A stretch of 64,000 nucleotides of DNA, taken from NCBI GenBank assembly GCA_002269645.1, contig NIVC01001486.1:1-64000 (forward strand). The letters are read 5' to 3'. This stretch comes from Macrostomum lignano (lineage: Eukaryota). Below, one piece after another: positions 15,454-59,925 of the stretch. Under the pieces are notes generated by a model that saw nothing but the letters and a program-made list of their open reading frames with translations, was not told the DNA's origin and made no database searches. The stretch's first letter is position 1. Every line of letters begins with the position of its first letter. A program made the translations under genes and the position numbers.

Positions 15454-17360
15454 ATGCAGAGATTAAAAATACCAGCAACTGATCTCCTGCTGTTCTGGGC
15501 AGCCCTTGCTAGGCTGTGCACCGCTTCCGTACCACCCAACCGCAGGGTATTCGCTACGTGGGTTGCTTTAGGAGGACGTTAGAGGCCCGTATCACTGGAA
15601 CACTTGCTGCTATCGGTAGTTTTATTGAAAGCAATTCGCTCACTGTAAAATTTTTTGCAGTCACATCTGCACCTACGGGCGGTTCCGATACTTTGGACTT
15701 CTATTCGGTTCGTTATGCTTGTAGAGAACTGTTAGTTATATCGTAATCAACTACTTAAAGTAATATTCTAAGAAAATCCTATTAAACTTGCAATCTATTT
15801 TTAGAATGAGTCATGTTCAAACACAAGTGACTCAGTGCCCTACGTAGGACCAACGTTTATTTGATCCAAGGACCGGATTTTAGCAGCTGTGTTTGCTTAA
15901 TTCAATATGTGGTAATGCTCAGACATTCATGACTGCTAATTCAAACATGTATGACCTAAGTAAATATCTGATCTCAAGCCGTTTTTTCGCGAAAATTTTG
16001 CTATAAATATAAGTGAAAATCCGAGTAAAAAATTCAGACCCGGAGCGGTCTCAAAGAAGACTTTGAAGACAAAGAAAAGAAGACCAATCTCTGAGGGACG
16101 ATTCTTGTCCAATTGGTAAGCGCTTACCAAATTTAGTTTTTTGTTGCTAGCGTTAATTAATAAGTTTATTATAGTTGCTTACGAGAGCCTTTTTGCCGGC
16201 CCATTTAAGAAAGACCTCCTTGTTTTTTTTATTAGAGGCAGGGGGGTTGTGTGCACCCGGGCGCAATTTAAGCGTCATTGGCACACAACCGGCGAGAGGC
16301 ATTACTGCCCATTCCGCCGACTCCCCTGAGCAGGCATACAAGCGCGCGGATACGTTACGCAGGCACACACTCACACAGGAGTGTACAGCGGCCCTAACTT
16401 TATCAATTGTTAGGCATGTACACTTCACTGCGCCTTGGGGGGGTTGGCTCTCAAGGCCGTTAATTGCACAAGCGAGCCAAGCCAAGATTCCAATCCAGCC
16501 CCAAATTAATGTGGCTGCACTTGGAATCGAGCCTGGGTCGCTGGCACACCAGAGCAGCTGCGCTACCGCTGGGCTACGGCCCCCTCGACCTCCTTGTTTC
16601 TTAGGATATATATTCCCAGAGGATGTATTTTATTAATTTGAGTTATCCGTCACGTTTCGGACGTAACGAAGAAGACGCCCTTCATGAGGACCTACTACAG
16701 AAACTCAGAGAATTCAATTTTTAATTTCGAGCTCGAGGACCGTCAGGACTTCTGATTCGCTCTTGTTTTTGCCCGATCAACAGATAAAGTGAAGGACTCC
16801 AGGAGACAACAGTTCACAGAAGCCAATTATCACTACTACAGTTCAGCAAGTGTCCCCAGTGTCTAGAAGTGGGAGTTTTCGAGTGACTGATCGCCACTGT
16901 TAAAACTCTTCACGCTCCTGCGGCCGGACTAGCGGATCCAACTGGAAGGAATTGGAGAGCAACTGTCAATCCGAATGCAGCGGCAATGTGTCTCAGATGT
17001 GCGGCCTTGAACTGAGCGACTCTGTTTATGAAGTAATTTACCCTGTGGGTAAGTAGGGGGGGGGGGCGTCTATTTGACTGCTCAGTAAGAAAAGCATATC
17101 TTTGACAATAATTGGTCTTAAAAATTGATCGAATGTCCTATCCTAACGCGTGTATCACACTCAGATCGCTCTCTGCTGACATGGCTTCAAAGGGGCAAAA
17201 AATGCCGAGCATTTCAAGCTTTATGAAACTGAGATCCGTAACTGACCTTAGCGCAGAAGTCAGCGAAGTCATCGAGTGAGCTGCCACCTGCCAGAGAAGC
17301 CCGGACTGTCTGGGCTGCACCTTGAGTCTGTGAGGTTCAGTGGGTCTGGATGAAGCTGTG
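15454..17360 (+). pseudogene. WSC-PAN paralog B1, pseudogene
   Basis: ATG 15454 MQRLKIPATDLLLFWAALARLC (signal-like). Shifted frames give IRYVGC and CSHICTYGRFRYFG. A degenerate PAN exon lies at about 17160-17360. Confidence 0.8.
16390..16584 (-). mobile_element. tRNA-derived SINE, family 2
   Basis: Minus strand reads GGGGCCGTAGCCCAGCGG (A box) ...GGCTCGATTCC (B box). A second copy is at 24.4-24.6 kb. Confidence 0.75.
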
Positions 17361-17870
17361 AGGCTGAGTGGATCTGGATGAAGCTGTGAGGCTGAGCGGA
17401 TCTGGATGAAGCTGTGAGGCTGAATGGGTCTGGATGAAGCTGTGAGGCTGAGCGGATTTGGATGAAGCTGTGAGGCCGAATGGGTCTGGATGAAGCTGTG
17501 AGACTGAGCGGATCTGGATGAAGCTGTGAGGCTGAATGGGTCTGGATGAAGCTGTGAGACTGAGCGGATCTGGATGAAACTGTGAAGCTGAGTTGGTCTG
17601 AATGAAGCTGTGAAGCTGAGTGTGTCTGGATGTAGCTGTGAGGCTGAGTGGGTCTGGATGCAGCTGTGAGGCTGAGCGGATCTGGATGAAACTGTGAAGC
17701 TGAGTGGGTCTGAATGAAGCTGTGAAGCTGAGTGTGTCTGGATGCAGCTGTGAGGCTGAGTGGGTCTGGATGAAGCTGTGGAGGCTGAGTGGGTCTGGAT
17801 GAAGCTGTGAGGCTGAGTGGGTCCGGATGAAGCTGTGAAGCAGAGTCGGTCTGGATGAAACTGCCAGGCT
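17334..17870 (+). repeat. 28-bp minisatellite GAGGCTGAGTGGGTCTGGATGAAGCTGT, about 19 copies (B1 3' end)
   Basis: Directly visible. Confidence 0.95.
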
Positions 17871-18319
17871 GATTCATCTCTAATGAAAAACTGTTAGAAG
17901 GATTCTGAGCAAGAATTATAGCGGAATTATTAAAAATAGACGTGACTCAGGCTTTGACTATTATTTATGCCTTATTGTTTTTAACGCTATCAAGAATAAC
18001 TACTGAAAATGCAATGTCCAGGGAAAACGTTGTGGTTCTACTAAAAATACTAATAAAGGATTGTTACATTCAAAATTAAATTTACTAGCTCAATTTAAAC
18101 TTTTGGATTTAATCTAGTTGTTAAAACATTCTGAACCTGACATGATATACGCAACTAAGTTCAGTTTTTAACACTAAACTCGCGCATCTCAAATTCTGGA
18201 CTGCCGAATACAATATGAAACGAAACTATTCAAGTGAATAGATTGAAAAATGTATTATTACAGAGCGACAGCGCTCAGAACACAGTTGTATTTCCGAAAC
18301 AGATCGAAATGAAACGCAA

Positions 18320-18829: not shown

Positions 18830-19776
18830 ATGTTTTCAAAAAGCTTTTCTGTAGGCTACTTGCTGATGTGGGCAGCGTTCGGAAGCTGCTTGACTTCCGT
18901 GCCGCCTCATCCGACGGCATTCCGCTACATCGGTTGCCACGTGGATAAAAGGGACCCCGACATGACCGGTCTCGTTGGAGTCGCTACATTCGGTCCGTAT
19001 TCGACATATCCCGGATGGCCATCTCTTTTGCGAAACGCTTCAATGACGCTGCAGCTGTGCAGCCAGATCTGCGCTTATGGGAGATTTCGATACTTCGGTG
19101 CGAGGCTCAGTGAATACTGCTGCTGTGGCAACAGCTACGGCTCGTTCGGTCCAGCCCCGGCTAGTGACTGCTCGTATAAATGCAAGGGAAACTCGTCTCA
19201 AATCTGCGGTGGAAACATGAGGAACTCCGTCTACGAAAATATTTATAATCACGGTGAGAGGGACTTTTTCTCATGCAAATTTTGTTTTGCCTGTCAGGAC
19301 GGCAACGTCGTTAAAACATCAAAAACCGTAACACAAAGCAGGATTTTTTATGATTTCATACTGAAAATATTCTTTTTAAAACCAAACTGCAAATTCCAAC
19401 TGGAAAAGTCAGGGCAATCAGTGTTCGTTGAATAAATCCCAGATATTTCCATACATTCGTAAACAGATTTATTATTTCTATAAGTTTTTGAGTAAAAATT
19501 TCTAAATTCTGTTTTAATACAACATTTGTAGCTGGCCAAGCAGTGACCAAGCTGCCAGCTTCTGCCATGCCGAGCATCTCAGCTTCACTGAGCTCCATCA
19601 CCCACAGCAGCGTCTCTGCCAAGAGCGGCATCCAGTGCGCTGCCGCCTGCCAGCGAAGCCCGGACTGTCAGGCCTGCGCCTTCGTGCCTTCGAGCCGCAT
19701 GTGCCGCCTGCTGAGATTCACCGCTGTGCCCGCTGAGGTGGCCAGCGAGGCTGAGTGGGTCTGGATGAAGCTGTGA
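18830..19776 (+). CDS. Secreted WSC + PAN/Apple domain protein A2 (exons 18830-19253 and 19532-19776; 222 aa)
   Basis: Signal-like N-terminus. WSC pattern YIGC..D...MTLQLCSQIC...YFG...CCCG..YG...C...C.GN..Q.CGG..RN.VY. The phase-1 GT/AG intron joins in frame to a 4-Cys PAN/Apple exon. Confidence 0.9.
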
Positions 19777-20215
19777 GGCTGAGTAGGTCTGGATGAAGCT
19801 GTGAGGCTGAGTAGGTCTGGATGAAGCTGTGAGACTGAGTGGGTCTGGATGAAGCTGTGAGGCTGAATGGGTCTGGATGAAGCTGTGAGGTTAAGCGGGT
19901 CTGGATGAAGCTGTGAGGTTAAGCGGGTCTGGATGAGGCTGTGAGAATGAGAGGGTCTGGATGAAGCTGTGAGGCTGAGTGGGTCTGGATGAGGCTGTGA
20001 GAATGAGAGGGTCTGGATGAAGCTGTGAGGCTGAGTGGGTCTGGATGAGGCTTTGATAATGAGAGGGTCTGGATGAAACTGTGAGACTGAGTGGGTATGA
20101 ATGGGGCTGTGAGACTGAGCGGGTCTGGATGAGGCTGTGAGAATGAGAGGGTCTGGATGAAACTGTGAGACTGAGTGGGTATGGATGGAGCTGTGAGGCT
20201 GAGCGGGTCTGGGTA
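19747..20215 (+). repeat. 28-bp minisatellite, about 17 copies; the first unit encodes the A2 C-terminus
   Basis: Period of 28 measured (19747 to 19775). Confidence 0.95.
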
Positions 20216-21686: not shown

Positions 21687-22012
21687 GGCTGAGTGAGTCT
21701 GGATGAAGCTGTGAGGCTGAGTGGGTCTGGTTGAAGCTGTGAGGCTGAGTGGGTCTGGATGAAGCTGTGAGGCTGAGCGGGTCTGGATAAAGCTTTGAGG
21801 CTGAGCGGGTCTGGATAAAGCTGTGAGGCTGAGTGGGTCTGGATGAAGCTGTAAGGCTGAGCGGGTCTGGATAAAGCTGTGAGGCTGAGCGGGTCTGGAT
21901 GAAGCTGTGAGGCTGAGTGGGTCTGGATGAAGCTGTAAGGCTGAGCGGGTCTGGATAAAGCTGTGAGGCTGAGCGGGTTTGGATGAAGCTGTGAGGCTGA
22001 GTGGGCCTGGAT
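21657..22012 (+). repeat. 28-bp minisatellite, about 13 copies
   Basis: Directly visible. Confidence 0.95.
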
Positions 22013-25560: not shown

Positions 25561-28500
25561 ATGCTGAAACTCTGCGCTCTGCTGCTCTGCTGGGCAGCCG
25601 CTGCTGCGGTGCCGCCTCAACCGTTGGAGTTTCGCCACCTCGGCTGCTACGTGGATGGCGCTGTTGGCAACCGAGATCTTGTAGGACTGGAGGGGGTGAA
25701 AAAGTTCGGACAGTTTGAGACTCACCCTCTCGCCCCAGCGTTCGGTTTCGATGACGCCAAGATGACACTGCAACTGTGCAGCCAGATGTGCTCTTACGGC
25801 CGATTTCGCTACTTTGGAGTTCAGTCTGCGGCCTTCTGCTGCTGCGGCTCGGCCTATGGATCGCAAGGCATCGCATCGGCTGGCCACTGCAGCTTGGCTT
25901 GCAGCGGAAACTCGTCTCAGATTTGCGGTGGGGCTTACAGCAATTCCATCTATGAATTGACTTACTCACCAAGTAAGCATTTTGGATTGACGCAGCTCTT
26001 TCATGCGTAAAAACAGGGTTCTTTAATTTAGCCAAAATACGACTTTAAAATGTCGTTTTTAAGTCCCCGTGATATTCGAAAGAGGATTTGAACTTAAGCG
26101 CGATTTGGAAGCCGTGAGTCCAGCAACCAAACCGCTGCAAAATTCTCACTATTCAGACCCAAAATAGACAAGAAAAGCGTAATTGATCTTTCTTCCACCC
26201 CGGCCGCTTCCGCATAGGACAAATGGGGAAAAATTGGGATTTCATGTGAACTTAAGGCTCTGAAATGGAAGCGGTGGCCGATTAAGCCGGTTTCTCTATC
26301 GGATCTCTCTACTGGACCGACAATGAGAGAAGAATCGTCGAAAACCGCATCTCTCTATCATTTGGGCTCCCTGAATGGGATAAATGGGGAAAATGGGGAT
26401 TTCATGTGAACTTAAGGCTCTGAAATGGAAGCGTTGGCCGATTGAGCCGGTTTCTCTATCGGATCTCTCTACTGGACCGACAATGAGAATCTGATTGATG
26501 AAGCAGGCCGGCAAAGCTGCCTTGAGTCTTTATGTTAAAGAATGTTTTAATGATTTCTGTAACTATATTTAACGTTAAAATATCTTTTTAGTATCTGTAT
26601 TAGACTTTTTTGAACAGGTTTAATGAAATATTAAAATGCACGATTTTAGTACTGTATGAATACAGTGCATTTGCAAATAATGGGAACCAAAAGTGCATGA
26701 GCAAATAGTAACAAGCAAAAGTACATGGAACAGAGCAAGTAGTGGCAAGCAAAAGTTCATAGGTAGGTATAAGTCTTTCGAATGTTGGAGTGCATCGCAA
26801 GGAAAAACTAAAACTTGTCTAGCTCGGGTCTACGATCTAGTGAAAGCACGATTAGTCTTTCTTTTGCACAACTACAGCAGCGATATTTTGTGCATCCCGG
26901 AGAAACGGATTGCAGTTGGGCTCAATTCTGGAATCGCCAATCAACCACCATACATTGTCATGCCAAACACTGGTAGTGTAGTGCCCGCGATGGAGAGATC
27001 TGCCATAGTGGCATATCACTATCACAGGACTGCCGAAGTCGGAATTACTCTCAGCTCTTGGTGAGTACCGTATTTGGGTGTTGATTTTTTCGGTATTATA
27101 GTTTTCTGGAGTCCTGCTGAAGTAAATAATTGCAAACTTGGCCGCTGATGGAATAATCTGCTTTCAATCAAGCCTTCGCATCCTAATTGGCCGCACTGCG
27201 AAATGCGTGGTCGCAGTCGTTCTTCCAAAAGATCGTAAAGGCTAATCGGAGCCCTGCTGTACTCTGAGAGAGGAACGCAAAGAATTTGTTCACTGATTGT
27301 TCCTGTTGGAATCGAGGCTGCGCTGTAGCCACAACGTCGACAATTACGGAGCGCAGTAACATCTGCAAGGGCGCCATTAGCAACCGAGAGAGTCGAAAGC
27401 AGGGCTTCCAAGAACTCCAGAAAGCAGTGCTGTTCACCAGCAGCAAATCTGCCGGGAAGATGCGCCTGATAATTCCTTGTACTTCTGCGGCGGAAGTATT
27501 TTTTAGAGCTAGCATTTGATGAAAAAGTAGCTCTACAGATCTTTGCAAGTCGCTAGCTATGTCCCGTCTCATTAATGGGCCCTTCTGCTCCATCCAGTAA
27601 AGAAGCTGAATGGCAGAATTGGCATAGCAGTCTGCTCCGCTATTTCTTAGTCCACAGAGAGGCTGCGGCTCTGAACTTCTTGATGATGTTTGTTTGGCAT
27701 CCTTTCCTTTGAACGATGCTCTTGACGAGGCTCTGTTCTAACATTTTCCTCAGCAGGTAGAGAGGAGTAAGGATTAGCGTTGAGGCTTTTAGGAAGCTGT
27801 GTATCAACGAAGCGGCGCTCAGGATATCGTTGGCGAAAGGAATCTGGGTCGTAGGCATAATGACCTAGGAGCAAAAGAACTGCCATTACATGGCAGTCAC
27901 AGCCAGCTGTTCGGCTACCCACTTTGGACGAGGAGTAGTAGGCATGTAGCCTCCTTAGACCGGCATCGTGGAATCCAAAAGGGTTTCCATTCGGTAAATC
28001 GTTGAGGCGAAGAAGGACTCGATATGTTCGAGATGTGTGCCTCGAAAACACAACGGATATAAATATCCACGACGGTTGCCCGTTGCCGAATTTCTTTTTT
28101 CCAGTTCCTTGCCTGCTGTTCTTGCCGGAATTTCCAGCAGCGCATCGATTGAGGCAGCTGCGATGCAAGGTCTTCAAGCTCTAACAACGTATCACCGGCG
28201 AAATTCTCAAGCGTGCGTTGCACCTGGATGTTTTGGATATAGCTTTCAGACTGCTGTACATGAAATGGTCCCACACTTACTTCCTGAAGGTTTTCTATCT
28301 CAATTCGAGGAAAGCCTGTGGACTCAGGATCTAGCACATCAACTGGTGACCAGCGCCTCGACCCTTCGATAGGAGTTCGGGTCGCGTCACACAGGTAGTT
28401 CTCACCTTCAATCGGATCGAATTCGTTGCTGAGAAACATGCGCCTGGTAAAATTCTGACCAAACTAAAAAAGTGAGCTGTCATTCCATGACTTTGGCAGC

Positions 28501-29566
28501 GTTTTATTCAGTGGGAATCCAATGTGCGAGCGGTTGTATTTGGCAATACAGTTGTCGATAATGACATCCAGCCGACTAGATGTACTGAATTCAGCTGGCT
28601 GCTGCCACTGGTATGGCTCATGCCGCTCATGAATACACCTGTTCTGCTTGATTGCGGCGAACGCGCACTCAACAGAAAAGCGGGAGAGCGTAGCCAGCCT
28701 ACTGGTATTTGACTCAATAGCAGTCAGTGAACGGGACGATCCTCAGACTGGATTCTTTGAGCCATAAGTTCACATGAAATCCCCATTTTTCCCCATTTAT
28801 TCCATTCAGGGAGACCAAATGATAGAGAGATGCGGTTTTCGACGATTCTTGTCTCATTGTCGGTCCAGTAGAGAGATCCGATAGAGAAACCGGCTCAATC
28901 GGCCAGCGCTTCCATTTCAGAGCCTTAAGTTCACATGAAATCCCCATTTTTCCCCATTTATCCCATTCAGGGAGCCCAAATGATAGAGAGATGCGGTTTT
29001 CGATGATTCTTCTCTCATTGTCGGTCGCGGCGCACGGCATCGCATCGGCTGGCCACTGCAGCTTGGCTTGCAGCGGAAACTCGTCTCAGATTTGCGGTGA
29101 AACTTACAGAAATTCCATCTATGAATTGACTTACTCACCAAGTAAGCATTTTGGATTGACGCAGCTCTTTCATGCGTAAAAACAGGGTTCTTTAATTTAG
29201 CCAAAAAACGACTTTAAAATATCGTTTTTGAGTCCCCCGTGATATTCGAAATTTTAGAAATTGGAAAAAAGGCTGGCTGTTAAGAATACTATATTAATAT
29301 TTTCAACCAACCCTTCTACAGTCGATCCGGTGATGCCGAAACTGCCCGCGACGTCTCTGCCGAACATCACAGCCTCCGCGAGCTCCGTCACTCACCGCAG
29401 CATCGTAGCCAGCAGCGCAGTTGAATGCGCCACCATCTGCTACGGCAGCCCGGACTGTCAGGGCTGCGCCTTCGTGCCTTCGAGCCGCATGTGCCGCCTG
29501 CTGAGATTCGCCGCTGTGCCCGCTGAGGTGGCCAGCGAGGCTGAGTGGGTCTGGATGAAGCTGTGA
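25561..29566 (+). CDS. Secreted WSC + PAN/Apple protein D1 (exons 25561-25972 and 29322-29566), intron enlarged by a transposon
   Basis: Both exons are open, and the phase-1 A|GTAAGC donor and CTACAG| acceptor join in frame. The close paralog D2 has the same exons with a 202-bp intron. Confidence 0.8.
25863..26081 (+). repeat. About 220-bp direct duplication (second copy 29032-29251) of the exon 1 3' end, splice donor and intron start, flanking the transposon
   Basis: Near-identical GGCATCGCATCGGCTGG...GATATTCGAAA at both places. Confidence 0.9.
26852..27670 (-). pseudogene. Ubiquitin-specific protease (peptidase C19/USP) domain, frameshifted
   Basis: Manual translation: Cys box LCGLRNSGADCYANSAIQLL (about 27600-27660), EQHCFLEFLEALL (QQDxxEF-like), CRRCG and a later Cys pair, then His box VICHYGRSLHRGHYTTSVWHDNVWWLIGDS (about 26920-27020). 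Stop at 26852-26854. Confidence 0.8.
27647..28742 (-). pseudogene. C-terminal half of a PIF/Harbinger-ISL2EU-type DDE transposase with a degenerate SWIM-like tail
   Basis: Manual translation from 28742: LTAIESNTSRLATLSRFSVECAFAAIKQ (third catalytic Glu motif R..VE...IK), then FPRIEIENLQEVSVGPFHVQQSESY, FSRHTSRTY and YYSSSKVGSRTAGCDCHVMAVLLLLG, across frameshifts. Confidence 0.72.
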
Positions 29567-29920
29567 GGCTGAGTGGGTTTGGATTGGATGAAGCTGTGAG
29601 GCTGAGTGGGTATGGATGAAGCTGTGAGGCCGAGTGGGTCTGGATGAAGCTGTGAGGCTGAGTGGGTTTGGATTGGATGAAGCTGTGAGGCTGAGTGGGT
29701 ATGGATGAAGCTGTGAGGCCGAGTGGGTCTGGATGAAGCTGTGAGGCCGAGTGGGTCTGGATGAAGCTGTGAGGCTTAGTGGGTTTTGATGAAGCTGTGA
29801 GGCTGAATGGGTCTGGATGAAGCTGTGAGGCTAAGTGGGTCTGGATGAAGCTGTGAGGCCGAGTGGGTCTGGATGAAGCTTTGAGGCTGAGTGGGTTTGG
29901 ATGAAGCTGTGAGGCTGTGG
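29537..29920 (+). repeat. 28-bp minisatellite, about 13 copies (D1 3' end)
   Basis: Directly visible. Confidence 0.95.
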
Positions 29921-30939
29921 GTGACTGAGCTAGAGACTTAAATGTTATGTACGTGAGAAAACTATGAATAGAACGAGTGTTACTGAAAACGATATATTGA
30001 ACCTCTTAAGAACATTGCTGCTAACCCTCAATTAGTTTTTTACCTGTCTTTATAAAGTTTGATGTTAACCCCGAAATGTTCTTTGGAGTAGTAAGAAGAA
30101 AATAGAAATCTTTTTTTAATGTTTTTTTGCTATCGATCATAATTTTAGCGAATTTGCCCTTGATTTTTCTTTTTGACAGCCATACCCTTACAGCAAATAT
30201 GCGTGAAAATACGGATTAACTTATCTAATATTAGCTCGTATCTTTGGATGCAGACGTACCAGTATCTGGGATGAATAAGCTGTCAATTCCTTTCAGAAAA
30301 GCAGCAGAAAAGTTGAAGGAATAATTCCCTGGCTTTCCCAAGTTAGGTTGGGTGATACTAATTCGGTCATGAAAAGGCAGACTATAGATCCATTGTATCG
30401 GAGCTTTTCCGGTAGGTAGCTGACGCAACTTCCCCCCCCCCAAACTTCCCAGTCAAAGACTCGTGCAGAGAAGCTGCGGAAATTCTAGAAACAAAGAAGT
30501 TAAACTTTCCGCAGCAGCGAACCGATGTTTGCTTTACAAATCGATAAACGCACCGTCTTCTTCATACAATGCCAAGTCATGGTAAAGGAAAAGTTTTGGA
30601 AAATTCTCACTTTTTTTCGATTTAGGAATAAACGAAATCTTTGGAGCTGCAGTTCATGAACGCTCATTTTTTAGAAATGAGCTGGAGGCCGATAAAGAAA
30701 CCACAGAATGTTCAGTCGTCTCTAACATTTAGCAAAATATCAAATTGAAGCTAAGGAAGATTGGACATTAAGCTGAGAACTTATTCGTTACCTTCAATGT
30801 AGTCGAACCCTCGCGCAAAGTGTATAGTGTCACGCAGACGCTGCACCTGAGGCACCCTAGCCTGATGAAGCTAGGGCGACATCAGCTGCTGCCACGTCCG
30901 GCGGGCAGAATCACCCACGCCTGTCTTCCAGTAACAGGA

Positions 30940-33080: not shown

Positions 33081-34681
33081 CAAATACCATGTCTCAGCTA
33101 GTACAATTGATCTTTTTTCAGCCAGTGGAATAATAATTTACTTATCCAGCGCAATAATCCTTTTCTCATCAATTGCAGTAATTCAAGTCTCAGCTAGTGC
33201 AATAATCGATGTCTCAGGTGTGCGCACAGGAGGGTGAGAAGGGGACTGAGATGGTGAGGGATTGCAACGGTGCGGGAGCAGGGGCAGTCTAAAAAATCAA
33301 ATAATCTTCGCCCAGTTCATCATCATCTTCTTCCTATTCTTGTGCTGCAGCTTGTCGCTGCCTTTGGCGGTCTGGGTTGCGCAGATTCTGTGGCAGCAAG
33401 CTCAAAAGTGGCTGTTGCTCCCCATGATCCTCCCGTGGGTCTGCCAAGTAGGCATCAGGATCTCAGGTGAGTCGTCCTCCATCGCGTCATTCTCTTCATC
33501 CTGCTGCTAATCCATAGGTACCTACAGCTGCACAAAAGCAGCTATGCACAATAGTACATATCTGCGAATACCATTGAGGCACTACCCGACCATTATTTAT
33601 CAACCATATTCAATGGGGCTGAGGAATCAGTGTAGGCACAGCAGGCAGCCGGAATTAATTCGAACTAACTGTAGGTAGAAAAACATTTCAAGCAAACAGC
33701 TCCTGTCTAGCGTTTTGCATTTCATTTTTGTAGGAATAAAAAGTCTTTTTAAAATCCAAGAGCGAACAGTCTAGGCATGCAGAGAAGTTGGAGTTAAACC
33801 TGTTTATGCCTAATCAAAGACTTACTATACTTTTCACTGTTATGCATATTCATCTATAGTATACAGGGACCTTGAAACGCATTTCATGTTAAATCACAAC
33901 AGTGACAATTACTATAACTGCTTACTGGACTGACTACATATTTCGAAAGAAACTACTCGTAGTAGTCAATTTTTGGTCACTGAACGCAGCCGTTCGATTA
34001 AATTGATCTATCTATCTATCTATCAGTCAGCCTTGAACTAGAGACAGATAAGACAAACTCCGCCACTGAATAGCTGCAAAAATGAGAAAAATGGCTTTTT
34101 ACGGTAGAACGCAATCTACACCCAGTGTATATCTTATTGAACTCTAATTGCACCCTACCTGGCCTACTGAGTTAGTAGAAAGTTAAGCGCCAAAACAGCG
34201 CCAACACAACGTTAAGCGCCAGCACGTTCTTGGACGACTTTTTCTCGACTCTTACGATCTAAGAGTAACTCTAAGAACAACTCGTGACTCGTTGTTGATG
34301 CAACAGTCGCTTCTCCGTCACATTAGACGTAACTGAGTCGTTACAAAGTAAAATGAGTTGCCCCAGCGGCGCTAGAGTCACTATAGACGAAGACACTATG
34401 ACTCCTCACTCCGCCCTAATAAGACTCACATAGAAGCAGAACAGGCGATTCCAACCAACCTTGTCAGGCACAATGGTAGATTATTAGATCTATCTATTTC
34501 CGAAGGAGTTAGCGAACTGTGTGGGGGTTCAGGCATGCGAAACGCGACAGAGTTTCGTAGGAAGCTTTGCTAGCTCATGACCTTCTTTAATCCATGTGGC
34601 GCCGTTTGGTGGGGGGCTCATTAAAAAGTAATTCTGACTCACACTATAGGCGACATGTTGCCGTCGGTCGTTTTTAAGATA

Positions 34682-35522
<841 letters not shown>

Positions 35523-35796
35523 CTATTAACACATCAGAGATCAGAGTATTAATATATAGATTAATATAATATATCCGAGTAAGTATCAGAGATTTGCCTG
35601 AAATCTTCTTGTCTTGCTACTCACTAGTGGTCGATCTCTTTTTCCTACTAGGGCAAAACCTCAGACAATCAGGCACAGAATTGGTGGGTGATTCCTCATT
35701 GGCTTCTTGCAGCAAATATATTGCTTGAATTTCCTACCTGAATCAGAATAAGCGTCTCAGAAACTGCCGTTCGGCCACTCTCTGGGATTTTCCCCA

Positions 35797-36673
35797 ATGC
35801 TGAAAATTTGCGCTCTGCTGCTCTGCTGGGCAGCCGGTCCCGGACGCTGCGCCGCTGCTGCGGTGCCGCATCAACCGTTGGAGTTTCGCCACATCGGCTG
35901 CTACGTAGATGGCGCTGTTGGCAACCGAGATCTTGTAGGACTGCAGGGGGTCAAAAAGTTCGGACAGTTTGAGACTCACGCTGGTGCCCCAGCATTCGGT
36001 CACGATGACGCCAAGATGACACTGCAACTGTGCAGCCAGATGTGCTCTTACGGCCGATTTCGCTACTTTGGAGTTCAGCTCAACAGCTTCTGCTGCTGTG
36101 GCTCAACCTATGGATCGCACGGCATCGCACCGGCTAGCGACTGCAGCTCAGCTTGCAGCGGAAACTCGGCTCAGATTTGCGGTGGAGCTTCAAGAAATTC
36201 TATCTATGAACTGACTTACTCACCAAGTAAGCGTTCCGGATTAACGCAGCTCGTACATGCATGAACACGGGTTATGTTAATTTAGCGATGGACGACTTAA
36301 AAGCACTCTGTTTTCCTTAAATGCAGTTCGCATTGGAAGATTTAAGCATCAATATTTGAATTAATCTGACCAGTAAAAATATAAAAAGTAATATCGGCAT
36401 TCCATATTTCCAACCAACTCTTCCGCAGTCGATCCGGTGATGCCGAAACTGCCCCTGACGTCTCTGCCGAACATCACAGCCTCCGCGAGCTCCATCACTC
36501 ACCGCAGCATCGCAGCCAGCAGCGCAGTTGAATGCGCCACCATCTGCTACGGCAGCTCGGACTGTCAGGGCTGCGCCTTCGTGCCTTCGAGCCCCATGTG
36601 CCGCCTGCTGAAATTCGCCGCTGTGCCCACTGAGGTGGCCAGCGAGGCTGAGTGGGTCTGGATGAAGCTTTGA
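35797..36673 (+). CDS. Secreted WSC + PAN/Apple protein D2 (exons 35797-36226 and 36429-36673; 224 aa)
   Basis: Signal peptide, full WSC, and a phase-1 GT/AG intron in frame. Close paralog of D1. Confidence 0.9.
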
Positions 36674-36822
36674 GGCTGAGTGGGTCTGGATGAAGCTGTG
36701 AGGCTGAGTGGATCTGGATGAAGCTGTGAGGCTGAGTGGGTCTGGATGAAGCTGTGAGGCTGAGTGGGTCTGGATGAAGCTGTGAGGCTGAGTAGGTCTG
36801 GATGAAGCTTTGAGGCTGAGCT
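36645..36822 (+). repeat. 28-bp minisatellite, about 6 copies (D2 3' end)
   Basis: Directly visible. Confidence 0.93.
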
Positions 36823-37777
36823 GGGTGAAGGCGCAAGAGACTGAAGTGCTGATTACGGAGGCAAATTACAATAAGCGTTATTAAAATCGATACATTGAAC
36901 CCCCCCCCCAAGAACATTGCTGCTGACCCTGAAATCGAGTTCCCCTTCTCTGTCCTAAATGAAGTTTCATGTTAACCCTGCAATGTTTTTTGAGTTGTGA
37001 GAAAAAATCTAATATCTGAGTAGCTATAGAAAAACAAAAAAATACAAATCTTTTTTAAAGCTTTCTGGCTATCGATAACAATTTAGGGTGATTCACTCTT
37101 AATTCTTATATTTTGCAGATATTCATGTATTTATAGCAAATACGCATGCACAATTGGATACATAAATATTACCTATCTCTGGATGTAGAAGAATGTGGGA
37201 TGCATAAGCTGTGAGTTCCCTTTAAAAAACAGAAAAGTTGAAGGAAGCTTTCTATTCATGTGCTGTCTATCTGTCCATCCCAAGTTTGGTTGTGCGATTC
37301 TGACTCTGTCATGAGAAAGCAAACCCAATGCATTGTCTGCAGGAGCTTTTCCGGTTGGTAGCTGATGCAGCGTTCAGCACCTGTGAATGCGTCTTTTAGT
37401 CAGACTCGTGAAGAGAAAGTTAGCTGCGGATGTTCGAGAAACAAAGAAGAAATACATCCGCAGATGCAAGCCGTTGTTTGCTTTTAAAATCGATGAAGAA
37501 GCGATGTTAAAAGAAGAATAGCTAAAAAACTTCTCTTTTTTAGAGTTAAAAATAGAGGAAAACCTTGGAGCTGCTTTGGCAATGGATGCTTTACTTCCAT
37601 GGACAGCTGAACTCCATGAAAGCTACACTTGATTTTCTTAGAAATCTTGGCCGGTGAAGAATGCGTGTGTTCTTGGTAGCACAGAAAATCCACAGAATGC
37701 TCAATCGCCTGATTAATAAAGGGATCTGATGCAGAACTAAAGTGCTAAGTAGCCAGCAGCCAGTTAAGCAGATAAAG

Positions 37778-45298: not shown

Positions 45299-46749
45299 AT
45301 GCCGAACCAGCGAGACATCGTTGTTGACTTCTTCAAGGCTGGCAAGTCTGCAGCAGAATGCATGCGGCACCTGCAGGACATCCACCAGCATGAAGCCATG
45401 TCGCGGAGTCAAGTTTACCATATTTTCGGCCAACTGCGATCTGGTCACGATGGCTCTGATGGTCGCGGCAAGAATCGGGACCCAACCGTACGGACTTCCG
45501 CGAACATCCAGACTGTGGCCGCGCTGATCCAGCAGGATACGAGTACTTACTTACTTACTACCGACGGGGGGCAGAGCGCCGCGAACAGGCCGCGAGGCCC
45601 CTATCGCAACCTTAAGCTAAACAGAAACAGAAAGGCGTTAGCCTTGGGGCTGCGCCCACCCCTCGCCGGCAGAAGAGCTCGCGAGAGTGGCGTCTGCGAT
45701 TTTCATCCGCCCAGAATCCCGAACGAATGCACGTAGATCACGGATACGGTCCGGAGTGGTGAGCTCGTCAAGCCTTAGCGGGTGACCGAGGTGACGCCTC
45801 CGCGCCTCGTTGAAGTGCGGGCAGAAAGTGACGTGGTGCGTCGAGGTTTCCTCCTCTAAATCACAGAATGGGCAGATAGGGGAGCAGCCACTTTGCAGTG
45901 AAATATGTCTCTGGAAGAAGCCATGGCCAGTAATGACCAGATCCAGCAGGATAGGCGCCTTACCGTCAGGGAGCTGGCAGATGAATCAGGGATCCCTAAG
46001 ACCACTGTCCATGACATTCTAGTGCGAGATCTCCATCTCAAGCATGTGTCTGCCAGGTGGGTCCCTCATCTGCTCACTGCTGAGAACCGTGCGGAGCGGG
46101 TCCGCTGTGCCCAGGAGTTCCTCCGGATGATGAGGCAAGAGCCTGGCTTCCTCCGGCGAATCATCACGGCTGATGAAACTTGGCTGCACTACGTGACACC
46201 AGAGACCGAGAACCAGTCCAGGCAGAGGGCCGAACGGGATGCCAAGGCACTAACAAAGTCCCATGTGTCTCTGAGCACCAGAAAAACAATGGCTGTTGTG
46301 TTTTTCGACTCACACGGCATGGTGTACACCCATTTCGTCCCACAAGCCGAGACTGTCAACAGTGTCTACTACTGCTCCGTGCTGGACACCTTGATTGAGC
46401 AAATTCGACAAAAGAGGCCCAACATGGTGCAGGCTGGGTGGTTCCTCCATCATGACAATGCGCCCCTCACGCGTCGGGCCACACCAGGGAATTCCTGGCC
46501 AGGAGAGGCATCCGGGTGGTTCCGCACCCGCCAAATTCGCCTGATTTGGCACCTGCAGACTTCTGGTTGTTCCCGCATATCAGAAGCAACTTTGCTGGAC
46601 GCAGGTTTGACACCTTTCAGGAGGTGAAGAATGCATGGGAGGGGGTCACCGCCTCCATGGCCGCAAACCTGTACGCTGAGGCCTTCAACAAGTGGCATTT
46701 GAGATGGCAACGCTGCACTGAGAAGGATGGCGACTATGTTGAAAAGTGA
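45299..46749 (+). pseudogene. Mariner (DD34D) transposase, interrupted by a LINE fragment and one frameshift
   Basis: HTH N-terminus, WVPHLL, ITADETW (D1), HHDNAP (D2), NSPDLAPADF (D3). Restoring one base in the C-run at about 46463 gives 34 residues between D2 and D3. TIRs were not identified. Confidence 0.92.
45540..45939 (-). mobile_element. 5'-truncated I/R1-group LINE 3' end with (TAAG)n tail and a 14-bp TSD
   Basis: Minus strand reads [10 protein letters not shown]...[29 protein letters not shown] (ORF2 CCHC knuckle). TSD GATCCAGCAGGATA at 45526-45539 and 45940-45953. Confidence 0.9.
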
Positions 46750-50974: not shown

Positions 50975-51200
<226 letters not shown>

Positions 51201-51224
51201 CGACTGCGGTTGGTTGGTGCTGTG

Positions 51225-52040
51225 GTGTCACTCTGTGTGTCACTCTGTGTTACTCTGTGTGTCACTCTGGGTAGCTGCGGCACTCTGTGTCACTCTGGGT
51301 AGCTGCGGCACTCTGTGTGTCACTCTGGGTAGCTGTGGCACTGTGTTTGTCATTCTGGGTAGCTGTGGCACTCTGTGTGTCACTCTGGGTAGCTTCGCCA
51401 CTCTGTGTATTACTCTGTGTAGCTGCAGCACTCTGTATGTCCCTCTGGGTAGCTACTGCACTCTGTGTGTCACTCTGGGTAGCTGCGGCACTCTGTGTGT
51501 CACTCTGGGTAGCTGCGGCACTCTGTGTGTCACTCTAGGTAGCTGCGGCACTCTGTGTGTCACTATGGGTAGCTGCGGCACTCTGTGTGTCACTATGGGT
51601 AGCTGCGGCACTCTGTGTGTCACTCTGGGTAGCTTCAGCACTCTGTATGTCACTCTGGGTAGCTTCGACACTCTGTGTGTCACTCTGGGTAGTTGCGGCA
51701 CTCTGTGTGTCACTCTGGGCAGCTGCGGCACTCTGTGTGTCACTCTGGGTAGCTTCAGCACTCTGTGTGTCACTCTGGGTAGTTGCGGCACTCTGTGTGT
51801 CACTCTGGGTAGCTGCGGCACTCTGTGTGTCACTATGGGTGTCACTATGTGTCACTCTGGGTAGTTGCGGCACTCTGTGTGTCACTCTGGGTAGCTGCGG
51901 CACTCTGTGTGTCACTCTGGGTAGCTTCAGCACTCTGTGTGTCACTCTGGGTAGTTGCGGCACTCTGTGTGTCACTCTGGGTAGCTGCGGCACTCTGTGT
52001 GTCACTATGGGTAGCTGCGGCACTCTGTGTGTCACTCTCA
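51225..52040 (+). repeat. 30-bp minisatellite GTCACTCTGGGTAGCTGCGGCACTCTGTGT, about 27 copies
   Basis: Directly visible. Confidence 0.95.
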
Positions 52041-54369
52041 TCACTCACAAGCACTCTAAAATTTGCTGCAAAGACCAAAAGTCACACACCAGAAATCCGG
52101 GCGCTCCTCAGCCTCGTGCCCAGTCACGCGGACACGTCGGACATGCCGAAGCCGACGGCGAACAGGCCGCAGCGGAGCTTCTTGATATTTGATGATGAGC
52201 CGGCGGGGCAGGATGCAGCCCTTCAAACTGAGGTGAGGCTCATCCATGAAGAGCGTGAGCACAACCGAGCACATGAGGCAGAGGGGCAGGAGAGAAACCC
52301 TGGGCTCAGGGCAGGGCCAGCTGTACGAGCCTGGGGTGGGTGTATTTTTAGCACGCCTGGAGCTCTACAGTTTGGTTTTCTGTCTGCCCGGCCGTGCCTA
52401 GGCGCTCCGCCCCTCCGCTCGCCGCCCACGCAAATGATACAGCCAAGGACGACTTAAGTAGACGGACGGGAAACCTCGTTTCTTAGAAATTTTAGAAGGC
52501 AGGTGTTTCCGAAAAAATACACTACGGAGATAAAAAGTTTTCATTTTTTCAGCACAAAAGTTGTTATTGCTTTCGATAAGAGGCCGATCCAGTGTTCATT
52601 TTTGATATGTTGCACAATGACGTCACCACACAGCAGTAAATTGGCGAGTTTTGCTATGTTTCCAAACTTACCATGACATGACTTGCTTGAGGCAATCTTC
52701 CTAATAAACTTGCGGTCTAATCATTTTCAAGTTAAACAAGTTTTGCATGTCTCAAAGAGAGGAGGTTGATTGGAGACTTCGAACTGTAGAGAGCAGTGTT
52801 CTCCTTGCTTGCTGTTGTCCAGCTCTCCCTTCGTGCTGCGAGTCTGCCTGCAGCCCGGAGCAGGGCTCGCCATTTTCTCTCAGGTCAACCAGTCTGCCTG
52901 GTGTATTTCTATTGCTCAACAGGGTGGGGGCTGTGAAGGTCTTAGAAATCGAATCTTAGTTGCAGCGCTTGTTGAAGAAATTCTTAGAGTTTATCCAATC
53001 AACAACAATTACCGATCAGACTCAGACTCCGAGTCCAGGACCCGAGCGGTGCCAGCAGCAGCGGATGACTCCAGAGAGCTTTTTTGTCCCTTTTCCACAA
53101 TTTCAGACCCGCGAACTTTGATTTTGATCACACAGACAGCTGACATGTAGACTGTCACATTAATTTAAAACTTGGCAATGGAGTTGGTCAGTAAACAATC
53201 CACAGAGAGTGTGCAAGTGCCGCTGTACACCCAGTCAGAGCGTGTGTATGAGGGTGCTGCATGCGTATTGGCGCGCTTGTATGGTGTGCTCAGAAGTCAG
53301 AGGAATGAGCAGAATTGCCGTCAGTGCTGTATGTGAGAGAAGGTGGCCCACATTCACCTGCGAATATATTAATATTAAAAGCACTTGCACTTACTTACTG
53401 ACCCTCAACTAAAAGTTTGTCCTTGGCTGTACTGGGCGTACCTAAATAGGGGCAGTGTATTTGAAATAAAAACGGTGGCAGTGTAAGGCACAACATAGCA
53501 AATTCTTCTTATCAAGATTTATAACACAGAGTTGAATAGGAAGCGAAGTTAGCCATTAAAAGAGGCCCATAATAAGCTGCATCTCATTATTCTGGTAAAC
53601 AATAAATGAATAATACTTTATTCACAGTCTTGAATAAGTATAACAATAAAGTTCATAAGGCCCAGGATTGTCCCCGCAGTCGCGTCGGGATCTGCACCGC
53701 GCCCCAGAAAGCGACGGTGCTGTCGGCGATGCGAGCTTCTGACGCCATGGACGACTCTGCTGGACTGCCGCTGGCTCTGACGAGCTGCTGAAAACCGATA
53801 TCTGACTGTTAAAAGCACAGTGGCTAAATACGAGTTACGGAATGGCACCGGCCCGAATTGTCACAGCTGTCATTGGCTGGCTGCAGGAGTCTCAGTGCAG
53901 CCAGCGTGGCTATAGCACAGACGGCGACCCTGGATGTACCATTGTTAGTAGCTGCTGAATAGCTTTTTGCGTGGGTGTTAGGACTGAGATATTGTAAAGA
54001 ATAAGAGAATGAAAGAAGTAGCTGGAAAGCGGGACTTCATGCAGGCAATTCCGCGGTAAACCCACGGTTTTTTCTCACGCTTTTGCTACGAGCGTACAAA
54101 TAGCCCGGCTGGCTGGAAATATTGGCCCTGCCGTTGAGCAACTGCTTCGAACTTGAAAAACCACCCTATGCACTGTTTGAGCTGCGCACATTGAATTTGC
54201 GCAGCCACGTGCAGCCCCATATTTGTGGCCTGAGGATCAGATTAGAAAGAAGGTTTCCAGGAGCGGTTGTGGCCACCTAATCACGGACAACAACCAGGGG
54301 CACACAAAGGACTTGCTTGAAGAGTTTGCTAACTTGCTTTAGAATATCTAGAATAAGTATGATGTCCCG

Positions 54370-54500: not shown

Positions 54501-54685
54501 TTCGCCGTCGGTTGCTGTCGAAATTTTGAGCTTTTGTTTAATCAGTGACTAGACAGCTCCTAAATTCAGTTAAATGCTGTTGATGTTGCGTTAAAATTAA
54601 GTCAAAATGCACTCGTATTGACGAGCTTCATATTGAGTAGCAATCAGTGCAAAACATCTGCAACCAATTCTTACAGAACTTGTTA

Positions 54686-55635
54686 TGTCACTCTCACCAC
54701 TTAGGCACTCCAAATGTCACTCTCATCACTCACAGGCAAGCCAGATATCACTCTTATCACTCACAGGCACTCCAGATGTCACTCTCACCACTCAAAGGCA
54801 CACCAGATGTCACTCTCACCACTCACAGGCACTCCAGATGTCACTCTCATCATTCACAGGCACTCCAGATGTCACTCTCATCACTCAAAGGCACTCCAGA
54901 TGTCACTCTCATCACTCACAGGCACTCCAGATGTCACTCTCATCACTCACAGGCACTCCAGATGTCACTCTCATCACTCAAAGGCACTCTAAATGTCACT
55001 CTCGTCACTCAAAGGCACTCCAGATGTCACTCTCACCACTCAAAGGCACACCAGATGTCACTCTCACCACTCACAGGCACTCCAGATGTCACTCTCATCA
55101 TTTACAGGCATTCCAGATGTCACTCTCATCACTCAAAGGCACTCCAGATGTCACTCTCATCATTCACAGGCACTCCAGATGTCACTCTCATCACTCACAG
55201 GCACTCCAGATGTCACTCTCATCACTCAAAGGCACTCTAAATGTCACTCTCGTCACTCAAAGGCACTCCAGATGTCACTCTTATCACTCACAGGCACTTC
55301 AGATGTCACTCTCATCACTCACAGGCACTCCAGATGTCACTCTCATCACTCACAGGCACTCCAGATGTCACTCTCGTCACTCAAAGGCACTCCAGATGTC
55401 ACTCTCATCACTCACAGGCACTCCGGATGTCACTCTTATCACTCACAGGCACTCCAGATGTCACTCTCTCACTCTCATCACTGACAGGCACTCCAGATGT
55501 CACTCTTATCACTCACAGGCACTCCAGATGTGACTCTCATCACTGACAGGCACTCCAGATGTCACTCTTATCACTCACAGGCACTCCAGATGTGACTCTC
55601 ATCACTCACAGGCACTCCAGATGTCACTCTCATCT
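54686..55635 (+). repeat. 31-bp minisatellite GTCACTCTCATCACTCACAGGCACTCCAGAT, about 30 copies
   Basis: Period of 31 measured (54775 to 54806). Confidence 0.95.
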
Positions 55636-59032: not shown

Positions 59033-59580
59033 TTAGTTTCTCATGAATTCCCCAACACTCCAGTTTCTCATGAATTCCCCAACACTCCAGTTTCTCATGA
59101 ATTCCCCAACACTCCAGTTTCTCATGAATTCTACAGCACTCCAGTTTCTCATGAATTCCCCAACAGTCCAGTTTCTCATGAATTCCCCAACACTCCAGTT
59201 TCTCATGAATTCTCCAACACTCCAGTTTCTCATGAATTCTCCAACACTCCAGTTTCTCATGAATTCCCCAACACTCCAGTTTCTCATGAATTCTCCAACA
59301 CTCCAGTTTCTCATGAATTCCCCAACACTCCAGTTTCTCATGTATTCCCCAACACCCCAGTTTCTCATGAATTCCCGAACACGGCAGTTTCTCATGAATT
59401 CCCTAACACGGCAGTTTCTCATGAATTCCCCAACACTCCAGTTTCTCATGAATTCCCCAACACGTCAGTTTCTCATGAATTCCCCAACACGTCAGTTTCT
59501 CATGAATGCCCGAACACGGCAGTTTCTCATGAATTCCCTAACACGTCAGTTTCTCATGAATTCCCGAACACGGCAGTCCC
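59033..59580 (-). repeat. 27-bp minisatellite of the same family as 44088-45085, inverted, about 20 copies
   Basis: TTTCTCATGAATTCCCCAACACTCCAG is the reverse complement of that unit family. Confidence 0.93.
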
Positions 59581-59925
59581 AGTTTACCATTGTCCCAGGC
59601 CGCTTTGTCCCAGGGCTACCAGGGGCTGTCGGGCTGGTGCTGGTGCTGCAATTCTCGCTGGCATTGCTGCGGACTCGGAGTCTGACGGCATGGCTGATTT
59701 AACATCGTGTGTCCTGTGTACGCGTTTTGCTGGTCCTGAAATTATATACACAGCTGTAATACAAGCTTATCTCTTTTTGTCCTATAGCAACACCATTGCT
59801 TCAATTCACCCAGCTGGAAACGATTCACGATTTCCAGCATTGGCTGGGGTAATTGTGAGTAACGCTGCAACACTGTGTTTGCAGCGATGTTGTTGCTGTT
59901 GTACGTAAAAGTACGCATCGCGTTG

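Follow-up and report, generated by a model that had tools for sequence, protein, structure and literature searches.

The locus and its coding remnant

We analysed a stretch of 64,000 nucleotides (nt) of Macrostomum lignano (GenBank assembly GCA_002269645.1, contig NIVC01001486.1, positions 1 to 64,000; called the window in the following), in which an insertion bracketed by inverted repeats holds the remnant of a transposase gene that runs into a domain of the ubiquitin-specific proteases (USP; peptidase class C19). As part of the explanation set out below, the insertion (26082-29030, minus strand) is very probably a dead, internally deleted and hence non-autonomous copy of a cut-and-paste DNA transposon. 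An initial annotation, made from the sequence alone, had quoted a series of motif strings between the inverted repeats. A three-frame translation recovered all of these on the minus strand within 26700-28800, in the order given there and scattered over three frames: ESNTSRLATLSRFSVECAFAAIKQ (beginning at ~28715), YSSSKVGSRTAGCDCH (~27930), the Cys box GLRNSGADCYANSAIQ (~27680), EQHCFLEFL and CRRCG, and the His box CHYGRSLHRGHYT...WWLIGDS (~27010-26930).

The frame path of the window copy was traced by alignment to the related proteins P0001, P0002 and P0003. The resulting features of the coding remnant are, in the direction of reading:

28098-28757, minus strand: transposase part that begins with the catalytic Glu (ESNTSRL...VE...IKQ) and extends to CWKFRQEQ, 63% identical to P0001 residues 339-560
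28464-28466, minus strand: in-frame TAG nonsense codon (SSLF*FGQNF in the window, SSLFEFGKNF in P0001)
28095-28100, minus strand: frameshift 1, in an A6 run; P0003 reads CWKFRQE...NWSSRFGQWQPSWIF in one frame and the window shifts at NWKK / FGNGQPSWIF
27650-28090, minus strand: conserved C-terminal transposase tail PSWIF...GNPFGF...YSSSKVGSRTAGCDCHVMA...RRFVDTQLPKSLNA, followed by a linker (aligned with P0003, the translation of contig L001 and the tails of P0006, P0009, P0011, P0015 and others)
27650-27735, minus strand: frameshift 2, at the tail/USP junction in the poorly conserved linker; the tail frame is open to 27650, the USP frame from 27734
27462-27734, minus strand: USP segment 1 with the Cys box (GLRNSGADCYANSAIQ), corresponding to P0002 residues 80-158; the Pfam UCH match starts here at profile position 1
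27450-27475, minus strand: frameshift 3, between ...AAEVQGIIRR and HLPGRFAAGEQHC relative to P0002
27160-27468, minus strand: USP segment 2 with the QHC..EFL motif and the zinc-ribbon cysteines CRRC and QCGQLGC, corresponding to P0002 residues 124-261 (alignment A1)
27158-27169, minus strand: frameshift 4; P0002 continues in one frame (...CSGRCEEQITATDGRFSIVYF) and the window shifts between ...CEGLIE and KQIIPSAAKFAIIYF
26852-27163, minus strand: USP segment 3 with the His box (CHYGRSLHRGHYT), the Asp (WWLIGDS) and the stop codon, corresponding to P0002 residues 259-360; the His and the Asp are conserved in A1

As assembled, the remnant carries one nonsense codon and four frameshifts, and its USP frame ends at the stop codon 26854-26852. 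Another frame considered for 27160-27034 (ESRLFHQRPS...) was rejected, as the alignment with P0002 gives KQIIPSAAKFAIIYF... and the fourth frameshift. The stretch equivalent to frameshift 2 is read in one frame in P0002 and on its contig, L004. The initial annotation had suggested that one frameshift near 27660-27730 separates the two parts; a frameshift lies indeed within 27650-27735, but it is not a single lesion, as there are four of them next to the TAG and an N-terminal deletion; closing this one would still leave a gene that is broken at several places and has lost its N-terminus. Everything upstream of the catalytic Glu (zinc finger, helix-turn-helix (HTH) and both catalytic Asp residues) is absent: the similarity to P0001 sets in at 28757, at a distance of two bases from the repeat array, and P0001 has 338 further N-terminal residues. 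The transposase assigned to this copy therefore stands for the region from the Glu onward, and not for a DDE core; this piece alone matched no Pfam family. The window copy itself is incapable of transposition or deubiquitination, and could at most once have been mobilised in trans.

The USP domain

The relative-guided translation of the USP part matched Pfam UCH (PF00443) with E=1.3e-13 (51.6 bits, with a cut-off of 23.9) over profile positions 1-237 of 254. The first stitched translation had already matched it at E=9.5e-13, and the scores of the relatives were comparable (P0002, 55.2 bits and E=1e-14; P0011, 47.2 bits; P0048, 46.9 bits). The catalytic Cys (NSGADCYANS), His (RGHYT) and Asp (LIGDS) aligned with the catalytic residues of USP15, and this triad and four zinc-ribbon cysteines are intact in the window copy as well as in the other transposon-linked USPs (alignment A1). 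An AlphaFold2 model of the window USP, made on that alignment, reached a predicted local distance difference test score (pLDDT) of 84.9 and a predicted template modelling score (pTM) of 0.87; the top 50 PDB matches of this model in Foldseek were all USP catalytic domains (probability 1.0, template modelling score ~0.65-0.76), the best of them being USP2, USP15, USP21 and USP46. By sequence and by predicted fold, the window USP is confirmed as a real, compact (~280 amino acids, aa) and divergent C19/USP domain, which follows directly upon the transposase, as had been proposed. The accompanying proposal, a hidden Markov model (HMM) check of the stitched frames, gave the expected match to UCH, but none to DDE_Tnp_4 or SWIM in the window copy.

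The closest solved cellular USP by sequence was USP15 (23 bits, E=5e-4), and a recent capture of a host USP exon is ruled out because the sequence is that far from the solved cellular USPs. In phmmer comparisons the window USP scored 260 bits with P0002 and 143 with P0004, 48 and 55 with the orphan USPs P0024 and P0026, 47 and 45 with the Helitron-linked P0029 and P0055, 26 with P0048, 7 with P0011 and ~23 with the best human USP in the PDB. A viral origin of the USP was also considered and dropped: the compact USPs of giant viruses and the cellular ones match the model to a similar degree, which gives no direction.

Relatives and the fusion in a single reading frame

The stitched window query, run exhaustively with HMMER against 1.84 billion representatives, yielded 60 hits. 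A large word-index protein search with the same query gave P0001 as its sole hit; with the USP alone it found nothing, and with the profile of alignment A5 (nine trimmed family members) only four close relatives of the first row. Two scans of metagenome contigs (one led by the USP, A2, and one by the tail, A4) and one scan of viral contigs produced no confirmed locus.

The recovered relatives fall at different distances from the window copy. P0001 (560 aa, from a Joint Genome Institute (JGI) metagenome) is 66% identical to the window transposase piece and has an N-terminal extension of ~340 residues that contains a C2H2 finger and weak matches to HTH_Tnp_4 and DDE_Tnp_4; it lies on contig L001, which shares 68% identity with the window over 941 nt. 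P0002 (362 aa, same JGI sample; phmmer E=2e-79) is a single open reading frame (ORF) that runs from the last part of the tail through the linker and the complete USP. Its contig L004 overlaps the end of L001 over ~380 nt at 89-95% nucleotide identity, and is therefore taken as a second copy of the L001 family. P0002/L004 comes from another sample than the window and shares 41-46% aa identity with it. Two further proteins are complete single ORFs: P0011 (1048 aa), with transposase, tail, basic linker and full USP (UCH at 748-1032), whose 90% cluster contains ~14 intact copies (1048-1050 aa), each on its own contig and some of them from Tara samples; and P0048 (955 aa), with a weak DDE_Tnp_4 match, tail, basic linker and full USP (UCH). 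In P0002/L004, P0011 and P0048 the tail reads into the USP without a stop codon and without a new start, and on L002 and L003 the USP HMM matches are in the transposase frame. These comparisons support the view that the transposase tail and the USP belong to one protein in the relatives, the window's own family included, and so bear out the fused protein that the initial annotation had anticipated.

In L002 a lone conserved TAG (1942-1944, and at the same site in L005) parts an ORF with two C2H2 fingers from the in-frame transposase-USP ORF; it may mark a short intron, for which in-frame GT-AG pairs offer several choices of 87-129 nt, or a site of stop-codon readthrough. In the Macrostomum lignano protein model P0007 (UniRef100_A0A1I8IYQ6), the translated 160-nt repeat unit that also makes up the inverted repeats in the window (see below) is joined to the same transposase tail. 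In both P0005 and P0007, models from this species, transposon repeat units and tail fragments are fused to unrelated sequence, and one of the two is named 'DUF3480 domain-containing protein'; this element family has apparently given rise to chimeric annotations here.

Transposase type and C-terminal tail

The type of transposase had to be read from the relatives. In alignment A5 an HTH region is followed by conserved D-x-T-Y, D-x-G-Y and R-x3-E blocks, with conserved D, D and E columns, and by a long conserved C-terminal region that ends in C...C..G.R..GCC.H and an L-N motif. P0020 matched DDE_Tnp_4 above the cut-off (32.4 bits, cut-off 24.8) and its Glu region matched NCBIfam transpos_IS5_4. 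Sub-threshold matches to DDE_Tnp_4, all at the region of the first Asp, were found in P0001, P0006, P0013 and P0048, and weak, equally sub-threshold matches to HTH_Tnp_4 in P0001 and P0015; no competing transposase family was matched by the relatives in the domain searches. Sequence comparison therefore supports a PHIS/IS5-type transposase at the level of the family, of which the window copy keeps the Glu region alone.

The label PHIS/ISL2EU-like is supported in its first half, and not in its second. The full-length proteins P0001, P0006, P0015 and P0016 and ORF1 of L002 have C2H2 fingers and no THAP match (the THAP match in P0005 lies hundreds of residues away, inside a chimeric gene model of 2393 aa), and no YqaJ ORF was found on L002 (6.9 kb), L009 (5.9 kb), L010 (4.8 kb) or L008, contigs that may not span whole elements. 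With C2H2 in the place of THAP and no partner ORF of the YqaJ type, the family is, as judged from these sequences, not a canonical ISL2EU.

The tail had been described as SWIM-like, with two expected Cys residues replaced by Ser. In P0009 the tail (CCSCKIGSRLAGCCSH) has a canonical CxC...CxH and scored 16.5 bits with SWIM (PF04434; cut-off 19.6); the tails of the window, P0015 and P0011 did not match this profile. The window and L001 both lack the first two Cys of the motif (YSSSK...GCDCH), and because L001 has the same Ser residues within the same odd motif (YSSSK.GSRTAGCDCHVMA), the replacement is a lineage trait and not a decay of the window copy. 'SWIM-like' is on this comparison a fair term for the family, but for the window lineage it is not demonstrated. 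An endonuclease-like N-terminus that was suspected in P0037 and P0045 found no support in Pfam and was dropped. The long transposases that combine C2H2, HTH, DDE and a 'SWIM-like' end form a clade that is absent from the 2015 survey of PHIS elements (PMC4482050).

Distribution and origin of the USP

Among the ~18 representatives with a complete C-terminus, as read from the 60 hits of the exhaustive search, the USP was present in three lineages, and most of the other relatives end after the zinc-finger-like tail. The contigs L009 and L010 contain no USP-like sequence anywhere, including ~0.8 kb downstream, and P0105, from a transcript-type source, ends without a USP at the same residue as P0017; the USP-less state is therefore considered real. 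In a rough neighbour-joining tree of the region from the Glu to the tail, P0011 groups with the USP-less P0014 and P0017 (100% bootstrap), and the window and L001 form a separate branch. Since the USPs of the lineages share no specific similarity and the sisters of P0011 are USP-less, the simplest reading is that a USP was gained independently at least twice, each time at the same C-terminal position. The acquisition of the USP was thus, by sequence, probably patchy and repeated; the alternative would be the extreme divergence of one USP.

In the P0011 family (L002, L005, L006, L007 and L008) synonymous sites have diverged by 0.035-0.05 in the USP and by 0.09-0.10, about twice as much, in the transposase of the same pairs, which hints at a mosaic history or at gene conversion between copies.

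Inverted repeats and insertion site

A repeat search and blastn delineated two inverted arrays (26214-26488 and 28759-29026) that bracket the coding remnant. Each arm is ~270 nt long and consists of ~1.7 tandem copies of a 160-nt unit, and the complementarity of the arms is 95% over 185 nt and 98% over 103 nt. The features outside the coding remnant are:

25862-26081, plus strand: left host duplicate, 3' part of a WSC-domain exon and start of the intron (220-bp direct duplication)
26082-26213, minus strand: outer segment of 132 nt between the host duplicate and the left array, which is filler DNA or else the element's outer 3' end
26214-26488, minus strand: left (3') subterminal inverted-repeat array (blastn, 95-98% against the reverse complement of 28759-29026)
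26489-26851, minus strand: AT-rich non-coding stretch from the USP stop codon to the 3' repeat array, without a conserved frame
28759-29026, minus strand: right (5') inverted-repeat array of ~1.7 units, breaking off mid-unit (repeat search and blastn)
29027-29030, no strand assigned: filler of 4 nt (GCGG on the plus strand), unlike the repeat unit and the host paralog (alignment of both flanks with the paralog)
29031-29251, plus strand: right host duplicate, second copy of the 220-bp host duplication

The host duplicates (25862-26081 and 29031-29251) are 95.9% identical across 221 nt. A paralog 10 kb away (35738-36702, 83-86% identical) is continuous across both flanks and represents the single-copy, uninterrupted state, so that 26082-29030 can be identified as an insertion at the 3' part of the WSC-domain exon and the beginning of the intron behind it. 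At the left junction the sequence is ...CGAAA|GAGGATTT; the outer segment that begins there (26082-26213) matched neither the host paralog nor the other arm, nor anything else in the window. The divergence of the host duplicates (96% identity) and that of the repeat arms (95-98%) are alike, which as a sequence comparison fits a single old event. Inverted repeats, an empty paralogous site and multiple copies of the family are all present, as in a cut-and-paste transposon, and the DNA-transposon remnant seen in the initial annotation is in this respect upheld.

The 220-bp duplication far exceeds any target-site duplication made by a transposase, and the geometry of the site departs from a clean insertion of that kind. 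The upstream duplicate retains the complete WSC exon and the splice donor, and the host gene may still splice around the insert.

Proposed explanation and alternatives

The explanation that we consider best, and to which as a whole we attach a high probability, is a transposon that encodes a transposase-deubiquitinase, of which the window copy is a dead member. The autonomous relatives encode one protein of ~1000-1600 aa with, from the N-terminus: C2H2 zinc finger(s) and an acidic region; an HTH and a DDE core of the PIF/Harbinger/IS5 type; a family-specific C-terminal region of ~330 aa that ends in the SWIM-like Cys/His motif; and, in some lineages that include the window family, a linker and the compact (~280 aa) C19/USP domain. 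The DDE part would cut and paste the element, presumably with the 160-nt subterminal repeats as binding sites, and the tethered USP might strip ubiquitin or a ubiquitin-like modifier either from the transposase or from chromatin or repair factors at the site of transposition, so that the transposase would be stabilised or the repair steered.

Several observations weigh against this explanation. The insert is flanked by the 220-bp host duplication, and no canonical short target-site duplication was identified; the ends are non-canonical, with a truncated right array and 4 nt of filler at the host junction. Because of these irregular ends, and of the 220-bp duplication in the place of a short one, a transposase-mediated insertion of the window copy is not demonstrated. 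A blastn search within the window recovered no second copy of either the transposase part or the USP part. Within the window's family L001 supplies the N-terminal half and L004, a separate contig, the USP, and no single full-length copy was seen; no contig of a relative spans both ends, no convincing pair of terminal inverted repeats was found on L002, L003, L009 or L010, and the contigs of the P0011 family all break inside the element or at its edge. Finally, in the five intact copies compared in the P0011 family the ratio of nonsynonymous to synonymous substitution rates (dN/dS) is 0.15-0.19 for the transposase, i.e. purifying selection, and 0.33-0.87 for the USP, a weak and not decisive figure with only ~20-25 substitutions per pair.

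It could be argued that the USP is a second, adjacent gene, comparable to the Myb/SANT or YqaJ gene that accompanies the transposase elsewhere in PHIS: a pair of ORFs is usual in these elements (PMC4482050), the transposase and the USP are in different frames in the window, and the linker is poorly conserved. The tail-to-USP reading without a stop or a new start in P0002/L004, P0011 (with its many intact copies) and P0048, and the shared frame of transposase and USP matches on L002 and L003, make such an arrangement very unlikely. A one-off transduplication, in which a non-autonomous element caught a fragment of a host USP as Pack-MULEs do, would agree with the single copy in the window and with the irregular insertion junctions, but it would have to account for the same in-frame tail, linker and USP in a relative from another sample with only 41-46% identity (L004/P0002) and again in two distant lineages (P0011, P0048), for a USP without intron-like interruptions, and for scores of 23 bits with the best PDB USP versus 260 and 143 with the USPs of P0002 and P0004; we regard it as extremely improbable. 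Scarcely conceivable, in our judgement, is a pseudogene of a domesticated host transposase-USP gene that came to lie among unrelated repeats without any transposon insertion. PHIS transposases and transposon-borne deubiquitinases (DUBs) are known to have been domesticated (PMC9710019, PMC9741609), but here 270-nt inverted arrays of one 160-nt unit bracket the remnant, a host exon and intron are interrupted that are intact in the paralog 10 kb away, and the same unit is joined to the same tail in gene models of Macrostomum lignano.

A different question is whether the fusion is real and the USP nevertheless a dispensable or decaying passenger without a role in transposition. The absence of the USP from most transposase relatives and the higher dN/dS of the USP in the P0011 family would be in line with this. 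The USPs within the window family, however, are just 33-44% identical to one another, yet keep the catalytic triad and the zinc-ribbon cysteines, a conservation that argues for long-term constraint as far as such alignments can tell; the USP ORF is intact in the ~14 copies of P0011, and the repeated recruitment of USP, OTU, Ulp1 and VTD domains by unrelated transposons (PMC2836005, PMC9741609) speaks for a benefit. On these comparative grounds we think it rather probable that the USP of the transposase-deubiquitinase is, in functional copies, active and beneficial, and unlikely that it is a neutral passenger.

Relation to known transposon-borne proteases

Full-text literature searches turned up no PIF/Harbinger, ISL2EU or Spy element described with a USP, and the initial annotation had likewise pointed to no known case of a C19 USP as PHIS cargo. 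A partial precedent is Trichomonas vaginalis XP_001314237.1, to which Bao, Kapitonov & Jurka (2010, PMC2836005; citing Gladyshev & Arkhipova 2009) devote one sentence and which combines transposase_11 (IS4/IS5-type) with Peptidase C19. Like the proteins described here, it joins an IS5-related DDE transposase and a C19 ubiquitin hydrolase in one protein; unlike them, and compared by description only, it is a protist protein with DDE_Tnp_1 instead of DDE_Tnp_4, uncharacterised as a transposon family.

The PHIS superfamily unites PIF/Harbinger, ISL2EU, Spy, Pangu and Nuwa (Han et al. 2015, PMC4482050). The present family shares with it the HTH, the DDE_Tnp_4/IS5-type core with D-x-T-Y, D-x-G-Y and R-x3-E, and the terminal or subterminal inverted repeats, but its protein is, at 1000 aa or more, much larger and carries C2H2 fingers at the N-terminus and the C-terminal extension of ~330 aa with its SWIM-like end; no Myb/SANT or YqaJ partner ORF was found here, and the C-terminal USP of some lineages is not mentioned in PMC4482050. 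ISL2EU is defined there by a transposase with THAP, HTH and DDE, a YqaJ exonuclease as second ORF, AT target-site duplications and terminal inverted repeats that start with GG; the PHIS-type catalytic core and the animal hosts are common to both, unlike the N-terminal domain (C2H2 in place of THAP) and the YqaJ ORF, which was not seen here. The fungal PHISTA elements (PMC12730594), which encode a TET/JBP dioxygenase, are likewise PHIS-type elements that carry an enzyme directed at a regulatory mark of the host; this passenger is, in contrast, the product of a separate dioxygenase gene that acts on DNA methylation and not a fused protease.

Proteases of the ubiquitin and SUMO systems are known from other transposons: C-terminal OTU or Ulp1 domains on Ginger1 transposases, Ulp1 on Mutator-like elements (MULEs) and OTU on Helitron proteins (PMC2836005). 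Ginger1 and the MULEs likewise have a C-terminal papain-fold protease of these systems in the ORF of a cut-and-paste transposase, and have given rise to the same functional speculation, but their transposases are integrase-like or Mutator and their proteases OTU (C85/C88) or Ulp1 (C48), none of them C19. For the VTD deubiquitinases of Helentrons activity on ubiquitin chains has been shown, and a role in shielding the proteins of transposition from the proteasome has been proposed (Erven et al. 2022, PMC9741609); these VTD and OTU domains of Helentrons and Helitrons are also transposon-borne DUBs, but they belong to rolling-circle elements and to other DUB classes. Our finding is thus a variation on the known theme of transposon-borne proteases and not a new kind of system. 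It adds C19, the largest DUB class, to the transposon-borne DUBs.

Two proteins with a UCH domain are related to Helitrons: P0029, a Helitron-type protein with a PIF1 helicase and a C-terminal UCH, and P0055, with an N-terminal UCH, a sub-threshold match to Helitron_like_N and PIF1, on a 112-kb contig. The Helitron literature that was searched mentions OTU and VTD, and not USP.

Transposon-borne ubiquitin and SUMO proteases hint that mobile DNA must handle the ubiquitin signalling of its host, and for none of them has a role in transposition been shown. A USP fused to a simple DDE transposase would be a compact system for asking what deubiquitination does in transposition, with the intact near-identical copies of the P0011 family as material and the USP-less sister families as natural controls. 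One clade of large PHIS elements would, on our reading, have recruited USPs independently at least twice, and taken together with the OTU, Ulp1, VTD and Helitron USP cases this might indicate, as a tentative idea that we hold to be possible though less than likely, that deubiquitination is a convergent, general need of eukaryotic DNA transposons. A possible reason for such a convergence is the escape from a host restriction or a repair decision, dependent on ubiquitin, at the transposition site.

Surroundings in the window

The window is repeat-rich, animal-type sequence with a GC content of 44%; it includes numerous minisatellites, a Polinton-like segment and a mariner-like ORF. The segment 3386-8855 (minus strand) contains ORFs that resemble a protein-primed B-family DNA polymerase (3386-4438, 5072-5962 and 5889-6557) and an ORF that resembles a retroviral-type integrase (7818-8855), and looks like a fragmented element of the Polinton/Maverick type. 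A 240-aa ORF at 45905-46627 (plus strand) resembles mariner/Tc1-type transposases over their N-terminal part.

The transposon lies within a member of a tandem host gene family (18830-19435, 25561-26010 and ~35738-36300) that consists of a signal peptide and a WSC-like cysteine-rich exon, followed by 28-nt (Ser/Thr/Pro-rich) minisatellites (17269-17877, 19800-20200, 21700-22000, 29553-29949 and 36728-36826); the products look mucin-like. Long microsatellite or minisatellite arrays at 34655-35569 ((SIYL)n), 51200-52460, 54650-55530, 59040-59700 and 62490-63180 yield long spurious ORFs.

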